Sequence record: AP018399.1
DNA: 64,000 bases
Direction: 5' to 3' (one strand)
Of this stretch, positions 3,032-14,872 are shown piece by piece. Numbering within the stretch: position 1 is the stretch's first letter; every line of letters begins with the position of its first letter. A model generated the notes under the pieces. It was not told the origin of the DNA. It did no database searches and saw only the letters and a program-made list of their open reading frames with translations. A program made the position numbers and the translations under genes.

Positions 3032-3060
3032 ATTATAGACTAGCTATTAAGACTTGTCAA
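3032..3060 (-). promoter_or_regulatory. sigma70-type promoter (probably leaderless transcript)
   Basis: TTGACA-17-TATAAT; ATG 7 nt downstream. Confidence 0.8.
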
Positions 3061-3419: not shown

Positions 3420-3448
3420 ATTATAGGGCACAAAACCAACTCTGTCAA
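3420..3448 (-). promoter_or_regulatory. sigma70-type promoter
   Basis: TTGACA-17-TATAAT. Confidence 0.8.
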
Positions 3449-3449
3449 G

Positions 3450-4125
3450 CACGCATCCGCCAGCCAGTAGAGGGACAGTCCCCCGGCCTGCCTCCCATTT
3501 TACACGAAAAATTATAGTTGTCAACCCCTTGACAGGCAAATTCAAATGGGGTAGTCTTCTCGTGCCGAAAATTGCAACCACCAGCGCTCGGCTAAGGTGT
3601 GCTGGTGAAGTAGTACACCACTGACCTATCTCAATAGATTAAGGATGTTAAGACTATGTGAAGGATACGTTAAAATTTGGTTAACTTAACGGAAACTTAA
3701 CATTTCAGGCCGATTTGTTAAAAGTTCGTTAAAGTTAAAACCTCGTTAACTGACGCTGACGAGAGCCTACCGACTGTCGGTGATAGTTGGTCCGCACATT
3801 TGAAAGCGTAAGTTGATGATTGGTCTAGACTTTTTCAGTCTGGCGAAATTTTGGTGCGTCAGTTGGCGGCACTCTTACTAGCTCGGACTAAATCATTTAG
3901 ACCTTTAACTGACTCCATACCAAGTCCAAATCACATCTATCTCATAGTGATATCACTTTGATATCATACTGACGCTTAAATTATTAAAGTAGCTGTAACA
4001 AGGTTTCCGTGAATACTCTACCATAATTCAACAGGTTAGCAACCTATTTCATTAATTGCTCCACTTTTTCAACACCTTCCCACGAGAACAAATAAGTCCT
4101 AACGCAAGCGTTAGGCTTTGGCCCT
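3450..4125. other. largest non-coding gap, between divergent gene blocks; candidate origin or control region
   Basis: no credible ORF; nine GTTAA/TTAAC sites at 3647-3750; palindrome AGTGATATCACT 3946-3957; repeated ACTGAC; hairpin 4098-4115. Confidence 0.5.
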
Positions 4126-4446
4126 ATGAGCATTCTTACTATCCCTGAGCAAGATGAGGCTATTGCCTTGCAGCGGTTCTTGAACATTGCCAATTACATT
4201 GGCAAGAATGGTACACGTTATCTGGTTATAGGCCATAGGGAGTATGGTGCTGTTCCTAAAGATGACTGTGTGTTCATTACCTATGAGGACTTCAAGACGC
4301 GGCAACGTGATGTATGGGAGTTGGTTGTTCCTACCAGTTGGTATGGGAGCAACGGGCTTGATGAGATTAAGGGTATTGTGATTGACGAGAAGACTTTCCT
4401 GAGTGACTTCCATGAGTTCATTGATGACTACCGTGAATCTGACTGA
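4126..4446 (+). CDS. array paralogue 1 (EFxEFxxDY family)
   Basis: QRFLNIANYI near N-terminus; C-terminal DFHEFIDDY. Confidence 0.8.
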   Translation: MSILTIPEQDEAIALQRFLNIANYIGKNGTRYLVIGHREYGAVPKDDCVFITYEDFKTRQRDVWELVVPTSWYGSNGLDEIKGIVIDEKTFLSDFHEFIDDYRESD

Positions 4447-4810
4447 TACTGACCGGGAGGTCTATGCGTCTCGTTTGGGGATGGTGATAGATTCCTTCAT
4501 GGAGTTGGCTAGTAACCCGAATGATGTATTTGCTTATGAGGACCGGGGTGGTGTGGTTGGTTTGTTGCATCGTGCCAGTGGAGTTCGTATTGGGCTATGG
4601 CATCGACCGGATTACAACGAGGATTCTGGGCGTACTTCTTACAAGACGATGTTGATGTGGGAAGACGTGGTGATACAGGCTCATGGATTGCCTGCCTTTG
4701 AGGATAACCGGGAGGAAGGGCGAGGCTATGAGCCGGAGAGGATGATGGGTGAGTTCATGGAGTTCTTGGATGATTATCATCCGGGTTGGGAGGAAGGTGA
4801 ATGTTCCTGA
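4424..4810 (+). CDS. array paralogue 2
   Basis: C-terminal GEFMEFLDDY; start 4424 or 4433 (track gives 4403). Confidence 0.8.
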   Translation: MTTVNLTDTDREVYASRLGMVIDSFMELASNPNDVFAYEDRGGVVGLLHRASGVRIGLWHRPDYNEDSGRTSYKTMLMWEDVVIQAHGLPAFEDNREEGRGYEPERMMGEFMEFLDDYHPGWEEGECS

Positions 4811-5181
4811 TGACGATTCCTGATGGGGAAGGATTGGTTGCTACCCAGCGGTTCTATAACCTGTTGAAGAGCATCTATGTCTATGGGACTAACAAGCCTG
4901 CGGGTGGTACTGTCTTGCGGATAGGCGACTTCATAATGGAGTTGGCTCATACGGCCATTACTGAGCAGGTTGATGGGCTGGATGATGTAGTGACTCGGGT
5001 GAACATTACCTTTGTTCTAGGGGACGACGAGTTCTTGATTGACAAGGGTGTTCATTGCAATGATGAATGGGACAAGTGGGTGTTGGGTCAACCTGTTCGT
5101 TGTCAGGAAGTTCCTAGGGAAGAGTTTGTGGGCGAGTTCATGGAGTTCTTGCTTGACTACTACCCGGACTATGAGATATAA
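4801..5181 (+). CDS. array paralogue 3
   Basis: GGAGG RBS; TIPxxExxxAxQRF shared with paralogue 1; GEFMEFLLDY. Confidence 0.85.
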   Translation: MFLMTIPDGEGLVATQRFYNLLKSIYVYGTNKPAGGTVLRIGDFIMELAHTAITEQVDGLDDVVTRVNITFVLGDDEFLIDKGVHCNDEWDKWVLGQPVRCQEVPREEFVGEFMEFLLDYYPDYEI

Positions 5182-5182
5182 T
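5153..5182 (+). promoter_or_regulatory. sigma70-type promoter embedded in 3' end of paralogue 3
   Basis: TTGACT-18-TATAAT. Confidence 0.6.
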
Positions 5183-5212
5183 TATGGTCATGTATTTTGT
5201 GGATGACTATCT

Positions 5213-5617
5213 GTGAGCGAGCGTCGGCTATGGTGTGATAACCGGGCTGCGGAGATTCAGCAGCGTGTTGTCCGTTTGATTGGTTCCTTCAAGAAGTATG
5301 GGAAGTTGGTCAAGCACAATGAATTCAACTATGGTCGTCAGACTTCCAATCGGAGTTATGAACTGACGTTGGACGGTATTGGCGATGTGACGTTGGACCT
5401 TCGGACTTCATTGGTTCGTCGTGACAAGGAAACGGAAGACCTGTATCAAGACATTGCCGGGATTGGCTTTATCTTCCCCGGAGAAGGCGACAGGTTCATG
5501 TTCGTGATTCCGTGGGAATGGGTGGATGCCTATGCCCATAATGATGCTGTGGGTCCGTATTACCCGCTGGAAGAGCTATACAATGAAGTGATGGGGTTCC
5601 TAGAGGATTATCTGTGA
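5213..5617 (+). CDS. array paralogue 4
   Basis: C-terminal NEVMGFLEDY. Confidence 0.8.
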   Translation: MSERRLWCDNRAAEIQQRVVRLIGSFKKYGKLVKHNEFNYGRQTSNRSYELTLDGIGDVTLDLRTSLVRRDKETEDLYQDIAGIGFIFPGEGDRFMFVIPWEWVDAYAHNDAVGPYYPLEELYNEVMGFLEDYL

Positions 5618-5925
5618 TGTTCAGTGAAGAAGACTCTCCTGTTGCTAGGGACCGATACCTTCGACTGATTAAGCGCTTCGAACTGGAAGACCAGTCTGCA
5701 CAGGATGAGGAAAGTAATTGCACTTCCTACTGTGTTGAAGTTCAGGGTGGCGTGTGGTTGGGGATGGGCTATGGTTCATCCGGTGGTTTCTATATGTCCA
5801 TCAACAAGGCAGAGGTCTATCAATTCGATTTTCCGATTGATTGGACGTGGTGTGAATTGGTTCCTATCTGCCCGAAGGAAGCCCTGCTGGAAGAGTTCAT
5901 GGAGTTCATTGCAGACTACACCTGA
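5614..5925 (+). CDS. array paralogue 5
   Basis: DRYLRLIKRF; EEFMEFIADY. Confidence 0.8.
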   Translation: MMFSEEDSPVARDRYLRLIKRFELEDQSAQDEESNCTSYCVEVQGGVWLGMGYGSSGGFYMSINKAEVYQFDFPIDWTWCELVPICPKEALLEEFMEFIADYT

Positions 5926-5937
5926 TGGTGGTATAAT
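5909..5937 (+). promoter_or_regulatory. sigma70-type promoter
   Basis: TTGCAG-17-TATAAT with extended TG. Confidence 0.7.
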
Positions 5938-5963
5938 TAGCGCCTCAATTTGAGGAATTAATT

Positions 5964-6365
5964 ATGTTTTTGATTCGCAATTTGTTTAAGAAGAAGGAAC
6001 CTGTGGCTCCTGTGTTCTCTGAGGACACTATGCGACTGGCTCGCCATATTGAGTCTCATGGGTTCGATATTCGCAGTGTCAACAATGAAACCTACCATGC
6101 GGGCTGTGGCGGCGAATTGCCGACTCCGGGCTACCGCGATATCAACATTCAGTTGTCGGACACCACGAGCATCATGGCTCGCGTGTTGAGGGGTGGTAGG
6201 GAAATCCGCGTATTCGGTCGTGTCAAGTCTCCGACTGATGATTTGGTGGCCGCTAGCGTCCCGCACGAAGCCTTCTCTGCCGAGTTCGTGGGTAAGGTTG
6301 CTGATATGGTTCGTAACCGTGCATCGCTGCGTGCTGCGGCTCTGGTCAATGAAATGGCCCTCTGA
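5964..6365 (+). CDS. hypothetical protein (lacks array motif)
   Basis: GAGG RBS, 133 aa. Confidence 0.75.
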   Translation: MFLIRNLFKKKEPVAPVFSEDTMRLARHIESHGFDIRSVNNETYHAGCGGELPTPGYRDINIQLSDTTSIMARVLRGGREIRVFGRVKSPTDDLVAASVPHEAFSAEFVGKVADMVRNRASLRAAALVNEMAL

Positions 6366-6371
6366 TATAAT
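6343..6371 (+). promoter_or_regulatory. sigma70 extended -10 promoter (leaderless)
   Basis: TGaTATAAT; ATG 6 nt downstream. Confidence 0.65.
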
Positions 6372-6377
6372 TCAGTC

Positions 6378-6764
6378 ATGGAATTCATTAAAAAGCCTCT
6401 CAAAGCAGCCATTCAGTTGGTCAGCACGGTCGATTTCCATGCTGATGACGTGAAGATTGCCAATGTGCGTACCAAACGCATTCAGAGAGCGTTCCATGAG
6501 TTCGGAATGTCTTTCCCCACCAGTTACAATGGCAATGAGACTTATTGTGTCTTGCTGGGGGAAATGCCTGACCTGATTAAGCTGACCTTGAAGGTCAAAC
6601 CAATCAATCGTTACTTTGCTCTGGTTGAGAACAACCGAGAGCATCGGTTTATGGTTGTTGGCGAATGGGATTGGCGTCCTGACAAGGATACGATTCCGCT
6701 TCGCCGTGACCAGCTACACGAAGAGGTCATGGAATTCATCAATGATTATTCGGATTTGGATTAA
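6378..6764 (+). CDS. array paralogue 6
   Basis: EEVMEFINDY. Confidence 0.8.
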   Translation: MEFIKKPLKAAIQLVSTVDFHADDVKIANVRTKRIQRAFHEFGMSFPTSYNGNETYCVLLGEMPDLIKLTLKVKPINRYFALVENNREHRFMVVGEWDWRPDKDTIPLRRDQLHEEVMEFINDYSDLD

Positions 6765-7177
6765 TGTTTAATTTGCCTCCTGATGCGGACGTAACCCTTC
6801 GTTTGTTGCCCGATACTGGAATCAAGACCATGTATTACAAGAACACTCCCCGTAATACCTCGTTCGATGAGGCTGATGTTCCTGTCGCCAAGATGCGCTT
6901 CAACAAGATGCGTGGCTATTTCTACCTATTCCATGACAAGGTAGGTGGTACCCGTGCTTCCCGCGATGGTGAGCTTTATTCCTGCGTGGTCAATGACGTG
7001 CGCTTGGGTATGTTCTTCCGCAGTGATGGAACTGGATTCTACTTGCAAATTGGCGAGGAATCGTTTGATTTTGAGACGCAAGATAATTGGGTCCATAGCG
7101 ACGTTGAAGTTGTCGGTCGTAATTTTCCAATTATTGAAGAATTCATGGAGTTTATTGCAGACTACTACGAATTGTGA
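6764..7177 (+). CDS. array paralogue 7
   Basis: MRFNKMRGYF; EEFMEFIADY. Confidence 0.8.
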   Translation: MFNLPPDADVTLRLLPDTGIKTMYYKNTPRNTSFDEADVPVAKMRFNKMRGYFYLFHDKVGGTRASRDGELYSCVVNDVRLGMFFRSDGTGFYLQIGEESFDFETQDNWVHSDVEVVGRNFPIIEEFMEFIADYYEL

Positions 7178-7183
7178 TACGAT
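7155..7183 (+). promoter_or_regulatory. sigma70-type promoter embedded in 3' end of paralogue 7
   Basis: TTGCAG-17-TACGAT with extended TG. Confidence 0.6.
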
Positions 7184-7208
7184 ATCGGTCTAGTAAAGGA
7201 TTAATTCT

Positions 7209-7598
7209 GTGGCCGATTTGATTAGTAGTCGTGATAAACTAATTGATTTCGTAGAACGTCTGGAATATGACGCGGATAAGGTGTCTTGCACATTTAATCG
7301 CAATCCACCAGACCGGGATTATTACGGAAAGCTGGAATTCTATTACGACGATTTCCGAATTGAAGTGAGTTTTTACGTCAATCAGGATAAGCCTTCACAG
7401 AATAGTGCAATTGGCGTCAAGTTCAATAGCCATGATGGGCATCGGGAAGTATTTCTTTCCAGTGTGTCCGATAGTTTGGCGGTATTCTCTCCGGCATTTC
7501 ACAAGAAGGTTGCCGCATGGGCCAGCGAGGCAATGGGCCTGAATGAGCCGGATGACGACGAAGACTGGTTCGTTAGCAAAATAGGTGTTGTTTCCTGA
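7209..7598 (+). CDS. hypothetical protein (lacks array motif)
   Basis: AAGGA RBS, GTG start. Confidence 0.75.
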   Translation: MADLISSRDKLIDFVERLEYDADKVSCTFNRNPPDRDYYGKLEFYYDDFRIEVSFYVNQDKPSQNSAIGVKFNSHDGHREVFLSSVSDSLAVFSPAFHKKVAAWASEAMGLNEPDDDEDWFVSKIGVVS

Positions 7599-7616
7599 CA
7601 ATAGCGATGTTATAAT
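7588..7616 (+). promoter_or_regulatory. sigma70 extended -10 promoter (leaderless)
   Basis: TTGTTT-17-TATAAT with TG; ATG 6 nt downstream. Confidence 0.65.
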
Positions 7617-7622
7617 CATCGC

Positions 7623-8102
7623 ATGTCAAAGCAATCCAACTTCAAGGTTCGTACCGAGCAGTCTGTCCCGACTGACGCCATTGTCATTTCTGCGGAAGAC
7701 GCTCAGGTTTTCATCAATCGACTCGCCCGTATCACTGTAACGATGGACTTCCTGTTTTGGGAGTACCAGCACCAGAAGAACCGGGGCGACACTGACGTGG
7801 GTGTCATTGGCGGCAACATTCGCTTCATCAATGGGCTGGCCCATGAAGTGGATATGTACCACGTCGATGGCGAGCGCATCGGCTCATTCTCGTGGCTTTC
7901 TACTGACTACCAATACTTCCTTGGCGCTGCTATGGAGCTTGGTGATGAATACTACGAGGGCAAGTATGTCGTGGACATGCTAAAGCCCATTGAATCGTAC
8001 ACGTTCGCTCTCAAGACGCAGGAACGCTATCCGCTGGAAGAATTGTTCGGGGAGTTCATGGAATTCCTTGAAGACTACAACATGGCTCCGGTTCTCAAGT
8101 GA
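7623..8102 (+). CDS. array paralogue 8
   Basis: ERYPLEELFGEFMEFLEDY. Confidence 0.8.
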   Translation: MSKQSNFKVRTEQSVPTDAIVISAEDAQVFINRLARITVTMDFLFWEYQHQKNRGDTDVGVIGGNIRFINGLAHEVDMYHVDGERIGSFSWLSTDYQYFLGAAMELGDEYYEGKYVVDMLKPIESYTFALKTQERYPLEELFGEFMEFLEDYNMAPVLK

Positions 8103-8485
8103 ACATTTACCTGTACGACCATCTTGACCGAGAAGACTTCCACGTCATGTGGCATCGCTTCCGTCGCCTGTTGACCCACATGGGGTTCAATATGTCGTGG
8201 GCGAGTGATAGCGGGCGTCAGGTCTATGAAACCAAGACGCGGACGTTTGGTGACACGGAATACAAATTCGAAACGTGGAACGAACAGGGGTTGATGGATA
8301 TCGACACCATGAAGTTCTCTACCGGTGATTACCATTTCCATGTTTCAAACCAAGAACAGTGCGTGGACGTTGAATTGCGTCGCGAATGCCGTAACAACGA
8401 AGTGTTCCCCATCATGCCGTACCGTGACGAAGCGGAATTCATTTCCGAATTCCATGAGTTCCTAGACGACTACCTACCAGAATGA
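8099..8485 (+). CDS. array paralogue 9
   Basis: HRFRRLLTHM; SEFHEFLDDY. Confidence 0.8.
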   Translation: MNIYLYDHLDREDFHVMWHRFRRLLTHMGFNMSWASDSGRQVYETKTRTFGDTEYKFETWNEQGLMDIDTMKFSTGDYHFHVSNQEQCVDVELRRECRNNEVFPIMPYRDEAEFISEFHEFLDDYLPE

Positions 8486-8868
8486 CCACCTACTACCTTC
8501 CCAACCTGCTGTCAATCGAAGACTACCAAGTCATGGCGACTCGTTTCCATCGCATCATCAATGCGATGCCTGAGTTTGCAGAGAAGAAGACCCGTGGCGA
8601 CAGCCGTCACATGGTTCGCTACCGCAAGGACGGCCTGACGGTCATCTTCCGTCGCAAGAACGACATGCGTACCCGCTACGAAATTCAAATTGATTGCAAG
8701 GGCGGTCGGGATATCTTTTACGTCTACGACTACAACACGCCCCACGAGTTCATTCTGGCCTTCTGTAAGGCCAAGGTAGACGCCATTGATGAATCGTTGC
8801 TAAAGGGTGAAGTTCTGGATTTCATTGACGACTATTGTACGCTCAATGAAGTTGACTTGGAGAAATAG
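8482..8868 (+). CDS. array paralogue 10
   Basis: TRFHRIINAM; GEVLDFIDDY. Confidence 0.8.
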   Translation: MTTYYLPNLLSIEDYQVMATRFHRIINAMPEFAEKKTRGDSRHMVRYRKDGLTVIFRRKNDMRTRYEIQIDCKGGRDIFYVYDYNTPHEFILAFCKAKVDAIDESLLKGEVLDFIDDYCTLNEVDLEK

Positions 8869-8880
8869 GTGTTCTATAAT
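8852..8880 (+). promoter_or_regulatory. sigma70-type promoter
   Basis: TTGACT-17-TATAAT. Confidence 0.75.
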
Positions 8881-8902
8881 TGTCGGAAATTAAGGACCGA
8901 CA

Positions 8903-9340
8903 ATGACGTGTGACAGAGCCTTGGCTGAAAGATTGATTGAAATCACCAGTAAGCCGCTTCAAAATTATTCCCTAAAGCATATCGTTACGGGCCGTGACCC
9001 GTATTACGGATATCCGGATGATGAGTACAGCTTGCGCACGTTCGTCTGGGACATTTCTCCCAGAAAGCGTCTGGTGCTGAACATCAAGGATGACCCAACT
9101 CTGGCACCTAACGACCAAGATGTGTATAAGCTTGGCGTTGTTTACCATTTCCGTGGAATTCCTTTCTTCCGAAGAGCATTGGCCCATCATACTTTCCCGA
9201 AGTCTGTCCTTTCGACTCTGTGCCAGTTTGCTTATGATGGTATTACCGAGTTCGCGGTAAGGGATAAAGCCCTTGCGGCACGGTACGATGCCCAGCGTGC
9301 CCAAGAAGCCTGCCAACAAGCCCTACGACGCCTAGCCTAA
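8903..9340 (+). CDS. hypothetical protein (lacks array motif)
   Basis: AAGGA RBS, 145 aa. Confidence 0.75.
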   Translation: MTCDRALAERLIEITSKPLQNYSLKHIVTGRDPYYGYPDDEYSLRTFVWDISPRKRLVLNIKDDPTLAPNDQDVYKLGVVYHFRGIPFFRRALAHHTFPKSVLSTLCQFAYDGITEFAVRDKALAARYDAQRAQEACQQALRRLA

Positions 9341-9801
9341 TGCTCCTACGTGATATTAAATTGGATACCAGTGTGCTTAGCGATAAGCTGATGGACTACC
9401 ATGTCCAGATGCAACGCGCTGCTGGTCTATTCCATCTATGCCTGAACCAACCTATCATGCGGAAAGGGGCGCACATGGTCATGTCCAAGCGTGGCCGTAC
9501 CCTGACCATTACCACCCGTCTCTATCATTTCTTTGAAGAGGGTGACCCTGACTACGATTCATGTAGTGTGGAAATGCTGGCGACGGACGGTGTTCGCTTT
9601 TTGACGTTGAATTTGCTGGGTCAAAGTTTTGAGCTTGCTGATTTCTATCGACCAAGCCACAATATCTCGGCAAAGGATTACGAATTCATCATTGCCGCTA
9701 CGGCACTACCGACGTATGTCCGTCCGTGGTGTGAACATCGTGGCGACAAGCGACACATCATGGGCGAAATCCATGATTTTCTTGAAGATTATGCACTATG
9801 A
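9340..9801 (+). CDS. array paralogue 11
   Basis: GEIHDFLEDY. Confidence 0.8.
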   Translation: MLLRDIKLDTSVLSDKLMDYHVQMQRAAGLFHLCLNQPIMRKGAHMVMSKRGRTLTITTRLYHFFEEGDPDYDSCSVEMLATDGVRFLTLNLLGQSFELADFYRPSHNISAKDYEFIIAATALPTYVRPWCEHRGDKRHIMGEIHDFLEDYAL

Positions 9802-10493
9802 CCAGTAATGTGCCATTGTGGTATGCTCCGGCTGGATTTGTTCGTGGGCAATTTGCTCCCATTATAACTAACCGTAGTTCTGGTAAGAGCATGTATACAC
9901 AAAAGCTGTTGCTTGATTATTTCAAGAATCAGGTAACCACCACTGGAACCTCCGTAGTAACCGCAACACAGTCCCCGAATATGACCAGCACTTCTAACAA
10001 CATAGTTTTTGATTTGGAAAGTAGTGCAATTTCTACATTTCTTGATAAGATTCGTGGTGCATCAGGTTTCTCTAAAATGGAAACCGACGATTCCTATTTT
10101 GAAGATTTCGAACAATACATTATGAGGGCCAAGCGCATTTTCGATTGCCGCTCCTGCCTTCGTAAGCCCACACAGGGAGAAAGCCTTCATGGTGAAGCTG
10201 GACTGGAAAGCATACGAGTTCGTAGCACCGACACCATTTTCTACTATCGTAAGGAAATTGATGACGATGATGGTTCCGAGTATTTCGACGTTGCCTTCCT
10301 CAAAATCGGAGACGTGGTATTTCCCCTACTCACGGAACAAGCCGATTATAATGAGACGGACATTTTCCGGAACCACTTCACTCCCGGATTCGAACACCTA
10401 GACAATCTTCCTTTTCATCGACTGATGGAAGAGATTATTGAGTTTTACGAAGATTACGCAACCGATTATGGCATCCAACATGGCACTACTTAA
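9798..10493 (+). CDS. array paralogue 12 with N-terminal extension
   Basis: EEIIEFYEDY; extra ~95 aa Thr/Ser-rich N-terminus. Confidence 0.75.
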   Translation: MTSNVPLWYAPAGFVRGQFAPIITNRSSGKSMYTQKLLLDYFKNQVTTTGTSVVTATQSPNMTSTSNNIVFDLESSAISTFLDKIRGASGFSKMETDDSYFEDFEQYIMRAKRIFDCRSCLRKPTQGESLHGEAGLESIRVRSTDTIFYYRKEIDDDDGSEYFDVAFLKIGDVVFPLLTEQADYNETDIFRNHFTPGFEHLDNLPFHRLMEEIIEFYEDYATDYGIQHGTT

Positions 10494-11013
10494 TGGCAGT
10501 TCAAGCTTCACCATCAAGCAATTGATGGAAATGATGAAAAGTAATACAATTACTACCCACAATTTCGCGACTCAGATTCTTGGTGTTGATAAAGCCATGA
10601 TAGACAATTCAATTAACCTCAGTGATGCCTTGAAGGAACACGTTGAATTGGAACCAGAAATGCAAGACAAGATTACCTTTGTCGAACGTGCCCTTCGCAT
10701 CTATCACAGTTCAACCGGTGGTCGCAGTCTCAATTTGGGTATCACCGAACAGATGGTGTTCCCTGATGAAAACGACGTGTACTTCTTCATGAAGGTGCAG
10801 GAGTACGCCATTCGCGAGTTGGTGTTCGTGGTTCAGGACATTTACTTTGAAATCCCGGTCAACACCCTTCCCACTGGCATGGGCATCATCACCCAATTCA
10901 AGGGTGTTCCCCTAGTGGACAAGGCCGTGGAAAACGTCAAGGGCGAGATTGCCGACTTCATTGCCGACTACCTAGACGAGTACGGAACAGAAGACGAATT
11001 CGTTCCGAGATAA
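10480..11013 (+). CDS. array paralogue 13
   Basis: GEIADFIADY; ATG 10480 preferred to 10438. Confidence 0.75.
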   Translation: MALLNGSSSFTIKQLMEMMKSNTITTHNFATQILGVDKAMIDNSINLSDALKEHVELEPEMQDKITFVERALRIYHSSTGGRSLNLGITEQMVFPDENDVYFFMKVQEYAIRELVFVVQDIYFEIPVNTLPTGMGIITQFKGVPLVDKAVENVKGEIADFIADYLDEYGTEDEFVPR

Positions 11014-11050
11014 TTTAGCTCATGCTCCTAATTCAGTCGTAAATAGGAGC

Positions 11051-11497
11051 ATGAACCTAACAAAGACCTTCAATCATAACGAGGCCGAGTACACTCACTT
11101 CCTCAATGTACTCACAGATGCCATTCGAAACTGTCCCGAGATTCGTGGCGTTTCGGTACTAACTGGCGACACCATCATGTTAACGCCATTCCATCAGCTT
11201 TCCATTGAGCAGAATGGCGTCAATAGTTGGAGGAATGGCGGAAGCATTACCTACAAAGTCATCCTGAACCGCATTGTAGACAGCGGATTCGAATATCTGG
11301 TAGTCGATGATGGGACGAACAGGAACCATCGTCCAGAGGCCGTAGAAGAGGCTCTAGACGAGTTCTACGAAGAACTAGCCTTCCATGCTCCGGAAGAGAA
11401 CACTACGGACACAATGGATATCAGCCTTACGCTAGAGAATCTATTCCAGACGTACACTACATTCATCAATTCTGGTTACTCAAGCTCCTTCGCTTGA
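11051..11497 (+). CDS. hypothetical protein (possible degenerate array member)
   Basis: AGGAG RBS; internal EALDEFYEEL. Confidence 0.7.
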   Translation: MNLTKTFNHNEAEYTHFLNVLTDAIRNCPEIRGVSVLTGDTIMLTPFHQLSIEQNGVNSWRNGGSITYKVILNRIVDSGFEYLVVDDGTNRNHRPEAVEEALDEFYEELAFHAPEENTTDTMDISLTLENLFQTYTTFINSGYSSSFA

Positions 11498-11541
11498 CCA
11501 TAGGTTCCTTGGAAGCTATAATTGGCCTCCAAGGAATCTAC

Positions 11542-12138
11542 ATGACCAACTACAACCCTCACAATCCACTTTATAATTTCTGTGAGAAGATTCAGAATCG
11601 TTTCAGAAGCATTGGCTGGACCGACGAATCATACTCCGAAATGATTGGTCGCCTGTGCTACCTGATTGACAACGGTCAATCCATTCACCGAAGCATCATC
11701 GGTGAGCCTGTAAAGCAAGAATTCCATTACTTTGAATTTCAGGGACGCAAAATCCCTGTCCCCGGCCGAGTGGATACGAGTAATCCGGTTTGGGGTGAAA
11801 TCGAATTCCTCCCCCTTCATCACAACAGCTACCTAGTCAATATCAATTTGGCTGCGGGTGATGGTTGCTGGACATTTGCAGGCCAACGATTCTACGACCG
11901 AAGCAATGAATACAGCGAGCCGTTGCTTCTCCGCACGCCATATACACAAGACCTTGGCGAAGAGATTGACATTGCGCTTAAATTCTTTGAGCCGAAGAAG
12001 ATTGAGGACCGGGAAGACCGGGACCACCATGACGAATGCATCCAGCATTTCTTTGATGCATACAAAGGCAACGAAATTAGATTTGATGTGATGAAAGAAC
12101 TTCGTCATATACAAGACCGATATGGACAACCAGCATGA
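11542..12138 (+). CDS. hypothetical protein
   Basis: AAGGA RBS before ATG 11542 (track starts at TTG 11494). Confidence 0.7.
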   Translation: MTNYNPHNPLYNFCEKIQNRFRSIGWTDESYSEMIGRLCYLIDNGQSIHRSIIGEPVKQEFHYFEFQGRKIPVPGRVDTSNPVWGEIEFLPLHHNSYLVNINLAAGDGCWTFAGQRFYDRSNEYSEPLLLRTPYTQDLGEEIDIALKFFEPKKIEDREDRDHHDECIQHFFDAYKGNEIRFDVMKELRHIQDRYGQPA

Positions 12139-12554
12139 CCGAAATTAATTACACAGAACTGAATAGCAAGATTCTAGAAATTATCAAGCGTGAGCCTGTC
12201 AATTTCGCGTGGGTCATGAGTCCTGTCCCTGAATCAATGGGGATGCATTACGAAACTGACTACGCCTACATCGAATATCCATGTGGTTGGTTCAAGAAAT
12301 TGTACCTACGTTTCTCAGTGGTCAACCCACACGCTGCTCGTGAACACTACACCTACGTTCTGACTAACGTCAAGTTGCAGTACCTATTCCGCAGCTACGA
12401 TATTCCGCTGAACAAAATTGTCCACCATGCAATTCTGACGCATCGTGTAACTGATTACGCCACAAGTGTCCTGAACAAATACAAGCAAAAGGATGAGGCC
12501 ATTTCATTGAAATTCAATCGAATGGTCAATAAGCTGATTGAAAAGATTAGTTGA
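12135..12554 (+). CDS. hypothetical protein
   Basis: ATGA overlap, 139 aa. Confidence 0.7.
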   Translation: MTEINYTELNSKILEIIKREPVNFAWVMSPVPESMGMHYETDYAYIEYPCGWFKKLYLRFSVVNPHAAREHYTYVLTNVKLQYLFRSYDIPLNKIVHHAILTHRVTDYATSVLNKYKQKDEAISLKFNRMVNKLIEKIS

Positions 12555-12555
12555 C

Positions 12556-12584
12556 TTTACAGAAGTAAGATTACCCGGTATACT
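12556..12584 (+). promoter_or_regulatory. sigma70-type promoter (leaderless)
   Basis: TTTACA-17-TATACT; ATG 6 nt downstream. Confidence 0.65.
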
Positions 12585-12590
12585 CTATCC

Positions 12591-13346
12591 ATGCAAATTG
12601 AAACCGTTAAACCATATCCGAAGTATCCGATTTCCATGTACAAGGAACATGACCATGTTGTTCATGGCGTTCCAAGTGGCTGGGAAGCCTCTACGCTTTG
12701 GATTTGGTTGAAGACGCTGGAAAGCATGGAAGGTGTCACCGTTCTGGATATCGGGGCGTACACGGGCATCTACGGCCTTCTAGCGGCCAAGTACGGCAAG
12801 GACGTAGACGTGATTGCCTTTGAGCCGCTTAAAGCCACGTATACGCGCCTACAGGCCAACATCGGCCTCAATGCACTATCAGACACCATGAAGGCGTTCC
12901 CGGTCGCCCTGAGCGATTCTAGCGGCTCTGTGGAGCTTAACGTGACTGGCGACAATCCGTTGCCGTCCGGCTCATCGGTTGACCCGCATCCATCCAAGGC
13001 TAACGTCCGCGTTGAAACCATCCAGTTGACGACCGGTAATGACTTCTTCACGTTCAAGCATACGCTCAAGAAGAAGGTGGGCTTGATTAAGATGGACGTT
13101 GAGCGACACGAACTGCACGCTCTACGTGGTCTGACTGACATTCTAGTTTCAGATAAGCCCGTTTGCATTATCGAATTGCTGACTCCCGAAGAGGCTGTCG
13201 CAGTATTCGACTTCATGCGAGAAATCGGCTACACAAAAATTTATCAAATCAATGACGCACCAGTCATTAGCGATAAACTATACAAGGAAGTGACCGATAA
13301 TTTGGTCATTACTTCCAGTAAAACCAATTTCATGTTCAAGGAATAA
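12591..13346 (+). CDS. FkbM-family SAM-dependent methyltransferase
   Basis: VLDIGAYTG, VIAFEP, IKMDVE motifs. Confidence 0.85.
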   Translation: MQIETVKPYPKYPISMYKEHDHVVHGVPSGWEASTLWIWLKTLESMEGVTVLDIGAYTGIYGLLAAKYGKDVDVIAFEPLKATYTRLQANIGLNALSDTMKAFPVALSDSSGSVELNVTGDNPLPSGSSVDPHPSKANVRVETIQLTTGNDFFTFKHTLKKKVGLIKMDVERHELHALRGLTDILVSDKPVCIIELLTPEEAVAVFDFMREIGYTKIYQINDAPVISDKLYKEVTDNLVITSSKTNFMFKE

Positions 13347-13348
13347 CA

Positions 13349-13843
13349 GTGGGAATCAGCACTAATTACTACGTCGGCTATCACGTCAGGGTAGAAAACA
13401 AGAAATTCGAAGAATCCAACTTCTATTTGCGCAAGCATTGTTCCAATGCTGGCTGCAATAACTTCGCTGGTAGCATTTCGGGTAGTTTCTGTGCAGATTG
13501 TGGCTATACTACAATGGAGTCCATGACGGAAGCCAAGAAAACTACCACCACTGGACTCCCAGAAGCATTCCGTATTCGCAATGACGAAGATGCTTTTGCT
13601 GTGTTCTATAGCGATGATAGGACTTCCATTTTCCTAATCCCGAATTATATGCACATGGCAGCAAAATACGGTGTTCTGACCGAAGAATTTGAACGTGCTG
13701 GTATCACTTCGTTGGGTATTATCGGACCTTTCGCTGAAAAATTCGATGAATTCCGCGAATCATACGCATCGTTCCTGAAAACTCTGGACGAAGCAAGCAT
13801 CACATACCATGTCGAATACGGCATTGTAAAGTATTACTACTAA
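13349..13843 (+). CDS. hypothetical protein with Cys cluster (possible Zn ribbon)
   Basis: CSNAGC...FCADCG. Confidence 0.65.
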   Translation: MGISTNYYVGYHVRVENKKFEESNFYLRKHCSNAGCNNFAGSISGSFCADCGYTTMESMTEAKKTTTTGLPEAFRIRNDEDAFAVFYSDDRTSIFLIPNYMHMAAKYGVLTEEFERAGITSLGIIGPFAEKFDEFRESYASFLKTLDEASITYHVEYGIVKYYY

Positions 13844-13851
13844 GAGGAAAC

Positions 13852-14034
13852 ATGGGTAACGCATTTCCAACGGTTCAAGAAAGAACCTTTTACTATTTCA
13901 CCAGCGGCGACAAGAAATTTGAAAGTAGCAACTACAGCACTGTAGTTCGTGAACGTCTAGCAGCTATCGACCGTGGTGAAGACGTTTCAATTATCGGGGT
14001 TGTTCTAAACCCTATCCGACTAGCGGTATCCTAA
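13852..14034 (+). CDS. hypothetical protein
   Basis: GAGG RBS, coupled to next gene. Confidence 0.65.
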   Translation: MGNAFPTVQERTFYYFTSGDKKFESSNYSTVVRERLAAIDRGEDVSIIGVVLNPIRLAVS

Positions 14035-14285
14035 TGGCTGGCTATCACCTACGCGAAATTCCGAGAGGAACCTACGGCGAACTCTCCAAGATTAAGGAAG
14101 AGATTGAGGAAATCGAAGACTCAATCGCACAGGGCTGTAAGGTGATGGAACTAGTTGAATTGTCCGACCTATATGGAGCTATCGAAGGCTACCTTGGCAA
14201 GTATCATCCGACCGTGACAATGGAAGACCTACGGGTTATGTCTTCCATTACGAAGCGTGCATTCAAGAGTGGTGCCCGAGGATGA
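14034..14285 (+). CDS. MazG/PRA-PH-like all-alpha NTP pyrophosphohydrolase
   Basis: KIKEEIEEIED...ELSDL acidic ExxE/ExxD pattern. Confidence 0.5.
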   Translation: MAGYHLREIPRGTYGELSKIKEEIEEIEDSIAQGCKVMELVELSDLYGAIEGYLGKYHPTVTMEDLRVMSSITKRAFKSGARG

Positions 14286-14872
14286 GTATGCTAATCGACT
14301 ACAACCTAATCGGCAAAGCCGTTGACTTCTACGTGGCTAAGGGCTACGAGCATATCAACGTGGATTGGATGGTGGCTCCACGCTTTTCCTTCATGACGTA
14401 TGGAAAGGAAGGGGCACAATTCCGTACCTTGAGTTCTACCGGGTATGCCCAGCATTTGGTTGGGTCTGCCGAACAGGGATTCATCCAAGCAGTAAATAAG
14501 AAGGAAGTCGAATTTGACCGCCGCTACGTCAGTGTGACCCCGTGTTTCCGTCGTGGCGATATTGGGCCAGTGAACCAAGAATGGTTTATGAAGGTCGAGC
14601 TAAGCGCTGTGTCCAAGGACAATACCGTCTGGTTTGAAGAAATGCTGGAAGACGCTTGGCAGTGCTTCGATTACCTTGGGGCACAACAGGGCAAAATGCG
14701 GCTCTGGCTAGACGATAACGGCCAAAAGGATATCATGCATGAATACATGGATGGGTATCTAGAACTTGGCTCCTACGGTTATAGAAGCCTAGACGGCTTG
14801 ACAAATGGCAATTGTTTGATACACTATGCAACGGGATTAGCACTCCCGAGATTCCAACTCATCCTTCCATGA
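14282..14872 (+). CDS. stand-alone class II aminoacyl-tRNA synthetase-like catalytic core
   Basis: motif-1-like FYVAKGYEHI, GSAEQ, motif 2 PCFR...FMKVEL, ELGSYG, motif-3-like TGLALPRF; no anticodon domain. Confidence 0.75.
   Translation: MSMLIDYNLIGKAVDFYVAKGYEHINVDWMVAPRFSFMTYGKEGAQFRTLSSTGYAQHLVGSAEQGFIQAVNKKEVEFDRRYVSVTPCFRRGDIGPVNQEWFMKVELSAVSKDNTVWFEEMLEDAWQCFDYLGAQQGKMRLWLDDNGQKDIMHEYMDGYLELGSYGYRSLDGLTNGNCLIHYATGLALPRFQLILP

Follow-up and report, generated by a model that had tools for sequence, protein, structure and literature searches.

The plastic periphery of T4-type phage genomes and the host-takeover modules in the terminal repeats of SPO1 and T5 are hyperplastic early or accessory regions. 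The internal proteins of T4 are late-made, packaged proteins that carry an N-terminal, cleaved capsid-targeting sequence. The multigene families (MGF) of African swine fever virus (ASFV) and the terminal host-range families of poxviruses are made up of non-essential host-interaction genes. Immunity proteins of the SUKH (SMI1-KNR4) group are small alpha+beta proteins, encoded in tandem diverged arrays, with a hydrophobic-acidic C-terminal helix. The locus compared here with these systems lies in a 64,000-nucleotide (nt) stretch of the Xanthomonas citri jumbo phage XacN1 (AP018399.1, 384,670 bp), to which it is 100% identical (record positions 62,001-126,000). This stretch is called the window, and window coordinates are record coordinates minus 62000. 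At window positions 4126-11013, 16 genes (XacN1 ORF134-149, deposited as 'predicted ORF') comprise 13 co-oriented members of one family and three interspersed non-members. The 13 are read, with a probability of roughly 0.55, as one lineage-specific paralogous family with constant terminal helices and a hypervariable middle, whose members would be early accessory binders or inhibitors.

Like the early regions of T4, SPO1 and T5, the locus holds small, mostly acidic ORFans (ORF, open reading frame) at or near a terminal repeat, which have host-type promoters, are individually dispensable and vary between relatives. Those regions contain mostly unrelated genes, whereas XacN1-like arrays consist of 13-17 genes of one family. 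The internal proteins of T4 are the closest phage precedent for a constant signal on a variable body, as proposed in an earlier reading of the window made from the letters alone (hereafter the sequence-only reading): a constant short peptide is found on very different small proteins at a polymorphic phage locus. Unlike in T4, the XacN1 element is C-terminal, forms part of the predicted fold and is paired with an N-terminal helix. No N-terminal targeting propeptide was recognized, the conserved peptide being C-terminal and the N-terminal element a helix of the predicted fold. The ASFV and poxvirus families resemble the locus by analogy only, as tandem, highly diverged paralogues beside terminal repeats with varying copy number; they differ in that proteins and hosts are unrelated and in that XacN1-like arrays are without recent amplification. 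Membership in the SUKH group was rejected: none of the 13 matched SUKH or SMI1-KNR4 in Pfam (E <= 1 for 10 members, E <= 0.1 for three), and no SUKH entry was among the 50 listed Foldseek matches in the PDB. Unlike SUKH arrays, the XacN1 array has no toxin partner nearby.

The comparison with the SPO1 terminal repeat was also made in the XacN1 paper (PMC5852040). The head paralogue families A and B of the phages SPN3US and phiKZ are lineage-specific, with 2-20 members, and comprise late-made virion or ejection proteins, many of which carry N-terminal propeptides that the prohead protease cleaves (PMC5694885). The XacN1 family is likewise lineage-specific and varies in copy number between relatives. 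Unlike these paralogues, it has sigma70-type promoters and a conserved C-terminal helix, and it matches them neither in sequence nor in fold. Lineage-specific families of small early phage proteins that lie near a terminal repeat and are rapidly reshuffled are an already known phenomenon; the protein family itself and its apparent fold are undescribed.

The C-terminal motif was scanned in six frames over the 64 kb with the regular expression [ED][FVIL].[EDG]F[LIYFM].[DA]Y, and 30 shuffles were used as a control. Exactly 13 matches were obtained, all on the + strand between 4405 and 10971 and 1-13 residues before a stop codon; shuffled sequence gave none. The 13 peptides listed in the sequence-only reading were all recovered in this way. 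In the form L-x2-E-[FVI]-x-[ED]-F-[LIV]-x-D-Y, the motif was present within about 13 residues of the C-terminus in 13/13 members. In a family alignment of 72 sequences, its F was conserved in 68/70, its D in 71/72 and its Y in 69/72. Codons in the motif were synonymously variable (E, GAG 7 and GAA 5; F, TTC 10 and TTT 3; D, GAC 8 and GAT 5; Y, TAC 8 and TAT 5), and the longest nucleotide word common to two different array genes was 18 nt. The peptide is therefore conserved, as had been proposed, and not a DNA repeat; repeat spread or gene conversion as the origin of the motif was ruled out by the same two observations. The hydrophobic stripe of the helix is L-x3-F-x2-F-L-x2-Y and its acidic stripe E-x2-E-x3-D. 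In g11 numbering, the heptad-like stripe falls at 114/118/121/122/125 and is flanked by E117, E120 and D124.

An N-terminal helix with R-[FLY]-x-x-[LI] had also been proposed for most members, and it proved stronger than claimed. Its consensus in the family alignment is [ED]-D-x2-V-x3-R-[FVAY]-x-R-[LI]-x3-F, with the Arg invariant (72/72), the D/E in 68/72 sequences and the L/I in 66/72. The invariant Arg is followed by F, V, A or Y, then two residues on by R, N or K, and then by L or I. The stripe of this helix, at 17/21/24/25/28 in g11, is flanked by the invariant R20 and by R23. The N-helix is as conserved as the C-terminal motif. A by-eye impression, gained among the 13 members, that the residue after the invariant Arg covaries with the residue after the conserved Glu was discarded, the pair ranking 926th of 2,832 (42 sequences, underpowered).

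The genes of the array are listed below; g denotes family members and x non-members (aa, amino acids; pI, isoelectric point).

4126..4446, + strand: g01 (ORF134), member, 106 aa, ends DFHEFIDDY+4
4403..4810, + strand: g02 (ORF135), member, longest ORF 135 aa, start probably ATG 4412 or 4424
4801..5181, + strand: g03 (ORF136), member, 126 aa
5213..5617, + strand: g04 (ORF137), member, 134 aa from GTG 5213
5614..5925, + strand: g05 (ORF138), member, 102-103 aa, minimal domain
5964..6365, + strand: x06 (ORF139), non-member, basic, pI 8.9
6378..6764, + strand: g07 (ORF140), member, 128 aa
6764..7177, + strand: g08 (ORF141), member, 137 aa
7209..7598, + strand: x09 (ORF142), non-member
7623..8102, + strand: g10 (ORF143), member, 159 aa
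8099..8485, + strand: g11 (ORF144), member, 128 aa, modelled
8482..8868, + strand: g12 (ORF145), member, 128 aa
8903..9340, + strand: x13 (ORF146), non-member, basic, pI 9.0
9340..9801, + strand: g14 (ORF147), member, 153 aa, modelled
9798..10493, + strand: g15 (ORF148), member, 231 aa, N-terminal extension of about 100 aa
10438..11013, + strand: g16 (ORF149), member, N-terminal extension of about 70 aa, start probably ATG 10480/10481

The sequence-only reading had described 13 co-oriented genes of mostly 100-180 aa. The 13 members do lie on one strand, three unrelated genes interrupt them (5964-6365, 7209-7598 and 8903-9340), and the lengths must be corrected to 103-231 aa. The proteins are mostly acidic (pI 4.1-6.0), and many neighbouring genes overlap by 4 nt. 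The genes x06, x09 and x13 lack the motif and were not detected by the family hidden Markov model (HMM). A view of these three and of the downstream genes x17-x19 as degenerate members found no support with the HMM or in core-only hhalign comparisons. The deposited starts of ORF135, 137, 147, 148 and 149 (4481, 5276, 9475, 9891 and 10480) are downstream of the starts used here, and those of ORF135, ORF137 and ORF147 cut off the conserved N-helix with its invariant Arg. The longer ORFs were favoured by orthologues (P0049, which retains the helix, for ORF135, P0024 for ORF137, and P0050) and by the family alignment; the orthologue P0052 bears on the start of g16.

The cores between the helices, which the sequence-only reading had taken to be unrelated, are extremely diverged (mean column identity 17-19%), and several lines of evidence connect them. 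By BLASTP, g05 and g08 align end to end (34% identity over 102 aa, E 1e-11), and further end-to-end pairs are g05-g07, g03-g10, g11-g12, g14-g15 and g01-g16. Nearly all of 25 database representatives match the family profile at positions ~1-132 and not by the tail alone. The C-helix and 8 upstream residues were then deleted from each member, leave-one-out HMMs were built and the 270 ORFs of the window were ranked; 10 of the 13 held-out cores ranked first against the profile of the other cores. Profile-profile comparison of the cores with hhalign, built on orthologue alignments, gave probabilities of 96 for g05-g08, 84 for g01-g03, 83 for g05-g07, 77 for g03-g05 and 69 for g11-g12, with g07-g12 and g10-g12 at about 40%. 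Eight members are joined in one network in this comparison, which linked no x-gene to anything. Together with the order of elements in the structure models, these results speak for related cores. The region between the conserved ends is hypervariable, as had been noted.

Structure prediction and superposition of all 13 members had been proposed as a check. AlphaFold2 models were made for g11 and g14, both on the same family alignment. The g11 model is a compact alpha+beta fold with a predicted local distance difference test (pLDDT) score of 75 and a predicted template modelling (pTM) score of 0.69; its elements are H11-28, E42-50, E53-61, E70-75, E78-83, H91-98 and H111-125 (H, helix; E, strand). 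The C-helix block is its most confident segment (pLDDT ~92). The model of g14, the member hardest to recognize by sequence (pLDDT 63, pTM 0.63), has H15-32, four strands and H137-151, in the same order as g11. By Foldseek, the g11 model aligned with its own independent BFVD model at a template modelling (TM) score of 0.87 over 128 columns, and with the BFVD model of the paralogue g12 at TM 0.60 over 132 columns and 17% identity, helix included. Both BFVD models, of g11 and of g12, align from end to end and thus reproduce where the helix sits with respect to the core. The helix stripes resemble those expected if both helices pack against the same face of a sheet, and on these models the C-terminal motif is most likely part of a common fold rather than a separate docking tag. 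The proposal of unrelated domains on an appended docking helix does not agree with the related cores, with the C-helix as the most confident segment of g11 or with the equally conserved N-helix. A Foldseek search of the PDB returned nothing significant (best E 0.049, TM <=0.30), and a profile search of the PDB gave no match (E >= 0.5). The weak NTF2-like, SRP14, dsRBD and p32 matches were all non-significant and were not used.

Within the genome, the HMMs matched only the 13 genes among 1,662 ORFs of >=50 aa in XacN1 1-320,000 (the right direct terminal repeat, DTR, duplicates the left). Among 1.84 billion proteins, 25 representatives were found at E <= 1e-3, and those examined came from XacN1-like contigs; no family match was obtained in other deposited phages or in IMG/VR contigs. 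Pfam gave nothing consistent for the 13 (10 members at E <= 1, three at E <= 0.1), PHROGs a single member matching one family (E 0.0036), and PADLOC six different single-member matches (E >= 2.8e-4), none common to members. The statement that no described family is recognizable thus held for Pfam, PHROGs, PADLOC and the PDB.

The syntenic locus was found on contigs from five sequencing projects. The copy-number variation that had been suggested as a check does exist, in XacN1-like phages only: relatives carry 11-17 copies or have the array largely deleted. Contig L002 gave 17 family-HMM matches: g02 is absent, and additional genes resembling g03 and g04 occur together with a new member of 110 aa. 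The 13 members of L009 include this same new member and a g10::g11 hybrid, and g11 is missing. In L005, g07 is absent and a g01-like gene carries a g02-like tail (L005:769-1122). In L007, a contig present in four samples, the sequence passes from a 51-aa fragment of g05 directly into the interior of a gene located 8.8 kb downstream. The deletion (L007:1099-1400 versus window ~5673-14463) extends from part of g05 through part of ORF157 and removed nine family members, x06-x19 and an FkbM-family methyltransferase. The whole block is therefore dispensable in at least one lineage. In the L009 hybrid (9965-10468), the body of g10 is joined to the tail of g11, with the crossover inside the motif codons. 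The database hybrids P0061 and P0064 join a g04-like N-terminus to a g12 C-terminus and a g10 N-terminus to a g14 C-terminus. The hybrids arose either by genuine unequal recombination at conserved stretches or, where only a single contig shows them, as assembly chimeras.

No pair of members within a genome exceeded 39% identity in any of four arrays. The arrays therefore differ because old paralogues have been lost, kept or exchanged, and recent tandem amplification (the 'accordion' model) was ruled out. Between orthologue pairs, dN/dS (non-synonymous over synonymous divergence) was 0.06-0.5 for every member, at dS up to >1; dN of the members was several-fold above that of conserved downstream genes, and no pseudogenes were found in the four long arrays. 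By these substitution patterns, the array genes are functional, maintained and fast-evolving, all copies being under purifying selection.

Host-type promoters within the array are as follows.

5153..5182, + strand: sigma70-type promoter TTGACT-18-TATAAT, upstream of g04 and with its TATAAT retained in L002 and L009
5929..5937, + strand: extended -10 TGgTATAAT upstream of x06; conserved in L002, L005 and L009
6343..6371, + strand: promoter TGGTCA-17-TGaTATAAT; -10 ends 6 nt before the g07 ATG
7608..7616, + strand: extended -10 TGtTATAAT, ends 6 nt before the g10 ATG; TATAAT conserved in L002, L005 and L009
8852..8880, + strand: promoter TTGACT-17-TATAAT upstream of x13

A generic scan for the sigma70 consensus showed no enrichment (19 versus 14.5 +/- 3.1 expected), and the promoter signal emerged only from where perfect TATAAT boxes lie with respect to gene starts. 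Six of the eight perfect + strand TATAAT boxes between 3.9 and 12.6 kb fall in intergenic DNA, which makes up 287 nt (3.3%) of this region, 6-30 nt upstream of the starts of g04, x06, g07, g10, x13 and x18. Three of them have a TGn extension and three a good -35, and the boxes are kept in relatives even where the flanks differ. Promoters had been claimed for the genes of the array at large; host-type, conserved promoters are present, about six for the block and not one per gene. The block would thus form about six or seven short operons. A T4-type late motif, TATAAATA, was absent near the array (window 3-13 kb); the annotation of XacN1 includes a gp55-like late sigma factor at another place in the genome. 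Transcription by the host RNA polymerase, and hence early timing, is well supported by the sequence, since sigma70 promoters of the host type make early expression probable.

Under the favoured reading, the members would be small, mostly acidic alpha+beta proteins, 13 tandem paralogues in XacN1 and 11-17 in relatives. The C-terminal motif would be the amphipathic last helix of a common fold, and the N- and C-helices a constant scaffold flanking a four-stranded antiparallel sheet. Strands, loops and insertions between the helices would be the hypervariable part. The host RNA polymerase would transcribe the block, probably early, from the six or so conserved sigma70-type promoters. Each paralogue would be kept by purifying selection and yet be individually dispensable, and old paralogues would be gained, lost and recombined between phage lineages, with the conserved helix codons as possible crossover points. 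The products may serve as a set of early proteins that each act alone and bind or inhibit different host targets, in takeover or counter-defence. A role in takeover or counter-defence is suggested by promoter type, position and turnover, and the idea of a binder panel comes from the analogy with early accessory regions of large phages and with the multigene families near the genome ends of large DNA viruses. It is plausible that different binders are built on one constant scaffold; we infer the binding function and its targets from these analogies only.

Several observations weigh against this reading. The near-invariant R, E and D, in a family of ~17% mean identity, could form a shared functional surface rather than a salt bridge. 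Covarying pairs between the N-helix and the C-helix were not enriched (3 versus 4 expected; 42 sequences, underpowered). Without the helix, g02, g04, g14, g15 and g16 showed no link to the rest in core-only hhalign. The confidence of the models is moderate for g11 and low for g14, and both stem from one family alignment. The g14 model retrieved only its own entry in BFVD, which was built on an N-terminally truncated 108-aa ORF147. The outcome is nearly the plain paralogue family that the sequence-only reading had named as its own refutation, but five members are unlinked without the helix and the g14 cross-check retrieved no paralogues.

Part of this evidence also fits a docking module, in which both terminal helices present one invariant surface (R, E, E, D, Y) to a single partner, be it a host hub or an effector of the phage, while the variable sheet binds different targets. 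The R in 72/72 and the D and Y in at least 96% of sequences stand out at ~17% mean identity, everything between the helices is hypervariable, natural hybrids swap helix tails between paralogues, so that the module is interchangeable, and 13-17 specificities are maintained under purifying selection. Against this, the conserved positions are spaced as in a helix that packs on its own domain, no part of the compact predicted fold is better defined than the helix, whose position is reproduced in independent models of two paralogues, and there is no consistent linker-like, low-complexity spacer; this explanation is considered rather unlikely. Its fullest form, a combinatorial adaptor library in which the helices dock to one hub, the sheets capture different host proteins and members are exchanged at the helix codons, is doubtful as well, and we know of no such system described for phages. 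It is less probable that the terminal helices join co-expressed paralogues in homo- or hetero-oligomers. The heptad-like hydrophobic spacing with flanking charges on both helices, the co-transcription and translational coupling of the genes (many 4-nt overlaps) and a weak likeness in topology to acidic oligomeric alpha-beta-alpha proteins (non-significant Foldseek matches) would agree with oligomers; but the monomer model (pTM 0.69) already satisfies the hydrophobic stripes, and the free differences in membership between phages speak against an obligate hetero-complex.

The option of a sorting or packaging signal, raised in the sequence-only reading, would have the motif send the proteins into the capsid or another compartment, for injection with the DNA. 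In its favour, XacN1 has genes for a T4-like prohead protease and scaffold, the products of the array are small and acidic, and giant phages carry virion paralogue families of 2 to 20 copies (PMC5694885). This option is nevertheless very unlikely, given sigma70-type promoters, no T4-type late motif near the array, and a C-terminal motif inside the predicted fold where known capsid-targeting propeptides are N-terminal and cleaved. In the supplement of the XacN1 paper, ORF134-149 appear only as 'Predicted ORF', in its ORF table; the gel-band proteomics of that paper could miss small proteins. Just as improbable is a selfish or neutral expansion, with decaying duplicates lacking individual function and the motif kept for folding only. 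The loss of most of the block in the L007 lineage and the lack of homologues outside the lineage would suit it. The dN/dS of 0.06-0.5 in every orthologue pair, at dS up to >1, and the four long arrays free of pseudogenes argue against it, and with no pair >39% identical the copies are old and maintained.

The left DTR of XacN1 (65,875 bp) spans record 1-65,875 (PMC5852040), so that it ends at window position 3875 and the unique region has g01, which starts at 4126, as its first gene. The array thus begins 251 bp past the end of the ~66-kb terminal repeat. The last DTR genes are on the minus strand and the array on the plus strand, with a 546-nt non-coding gap between them.

3581..4125, no strand: non-coding gap that separates the array from the divergent DTR genes and contains the DTR/unique junction (3875)

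In this gap, 4 of the 18 CGTTAA sites of the window lie within 82 nt (3668-3749), amid many GTTAA-like repeats, and could form a cluster of protein-binding sites close to the end of the repeat. Immediately upstream of g01 there is a hairpin (4098-4115). Two perfect 12/12 sigma70 promoters (TTGACA-17-TATAAT) on the minus strand, at 3420-3448 and 3032-3060, drive the last DTR genes, divergently from the array.

Some further details of the array were recorded. The -35 of the g04 promoter (TTGACT) coincides with the L-D-Y codons (CTT GAC TAC) of the g03 motif, so that coding motif and promoter overlap (window 5146-5182). The TGnTATAAT boxes of g07 and g10 (6366-6377 and 7611-7622) end 6 nt before the ATG, 6-7 nt in relatives, and neither gene has a Shine-Dalgarno sequence. 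With the -10 box 6 nt from the ATG, transcripts would begin at or beside the start codon, possibly as leaderless mRNAs. A strong promoter (TTGACC-17-TATAAT) at the end of x17 (window 11494-11545) supports the start of ORF151 at 11542, as deposited, over a longer TTG ORF from 11494. The x09 slot is variable: in L002 (6652-7786) it holds three mutually unrelated ORFans, namely an orthologue of x09 (51% identity), a gene common to L009 and L005 and absent from XacN1, and one that is unique. In the N-terminal extension of g15, the orthologue from L005 shows a Walker-A-like string, AxxxxGKS (P0011, residues 12-20), which is degenerate in XacN1 (9798-10100, TNRSSGKS); the string may be left over from a P-loop protein that became fused to the family domain.

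By this analysis, 13-17 unannotated jumbo-phage genes collapse into one family with a clear two-helix signature, and several truncated gene starts in the deposited annotation are corrected. The family offers a handle on the first minutes of infection in Xanthomonas, a genus in which phage biocontrol is being pursued, and a natural experiment on how far a small scaffold diverges while two helices stay. If the members turn out to inhibit different host defences or housekeeping targets, they would provide a ready-made set of new inhibitor specificities; should the helices instead bind one partner in common, the array would represent a new kind of viral adaptor system.

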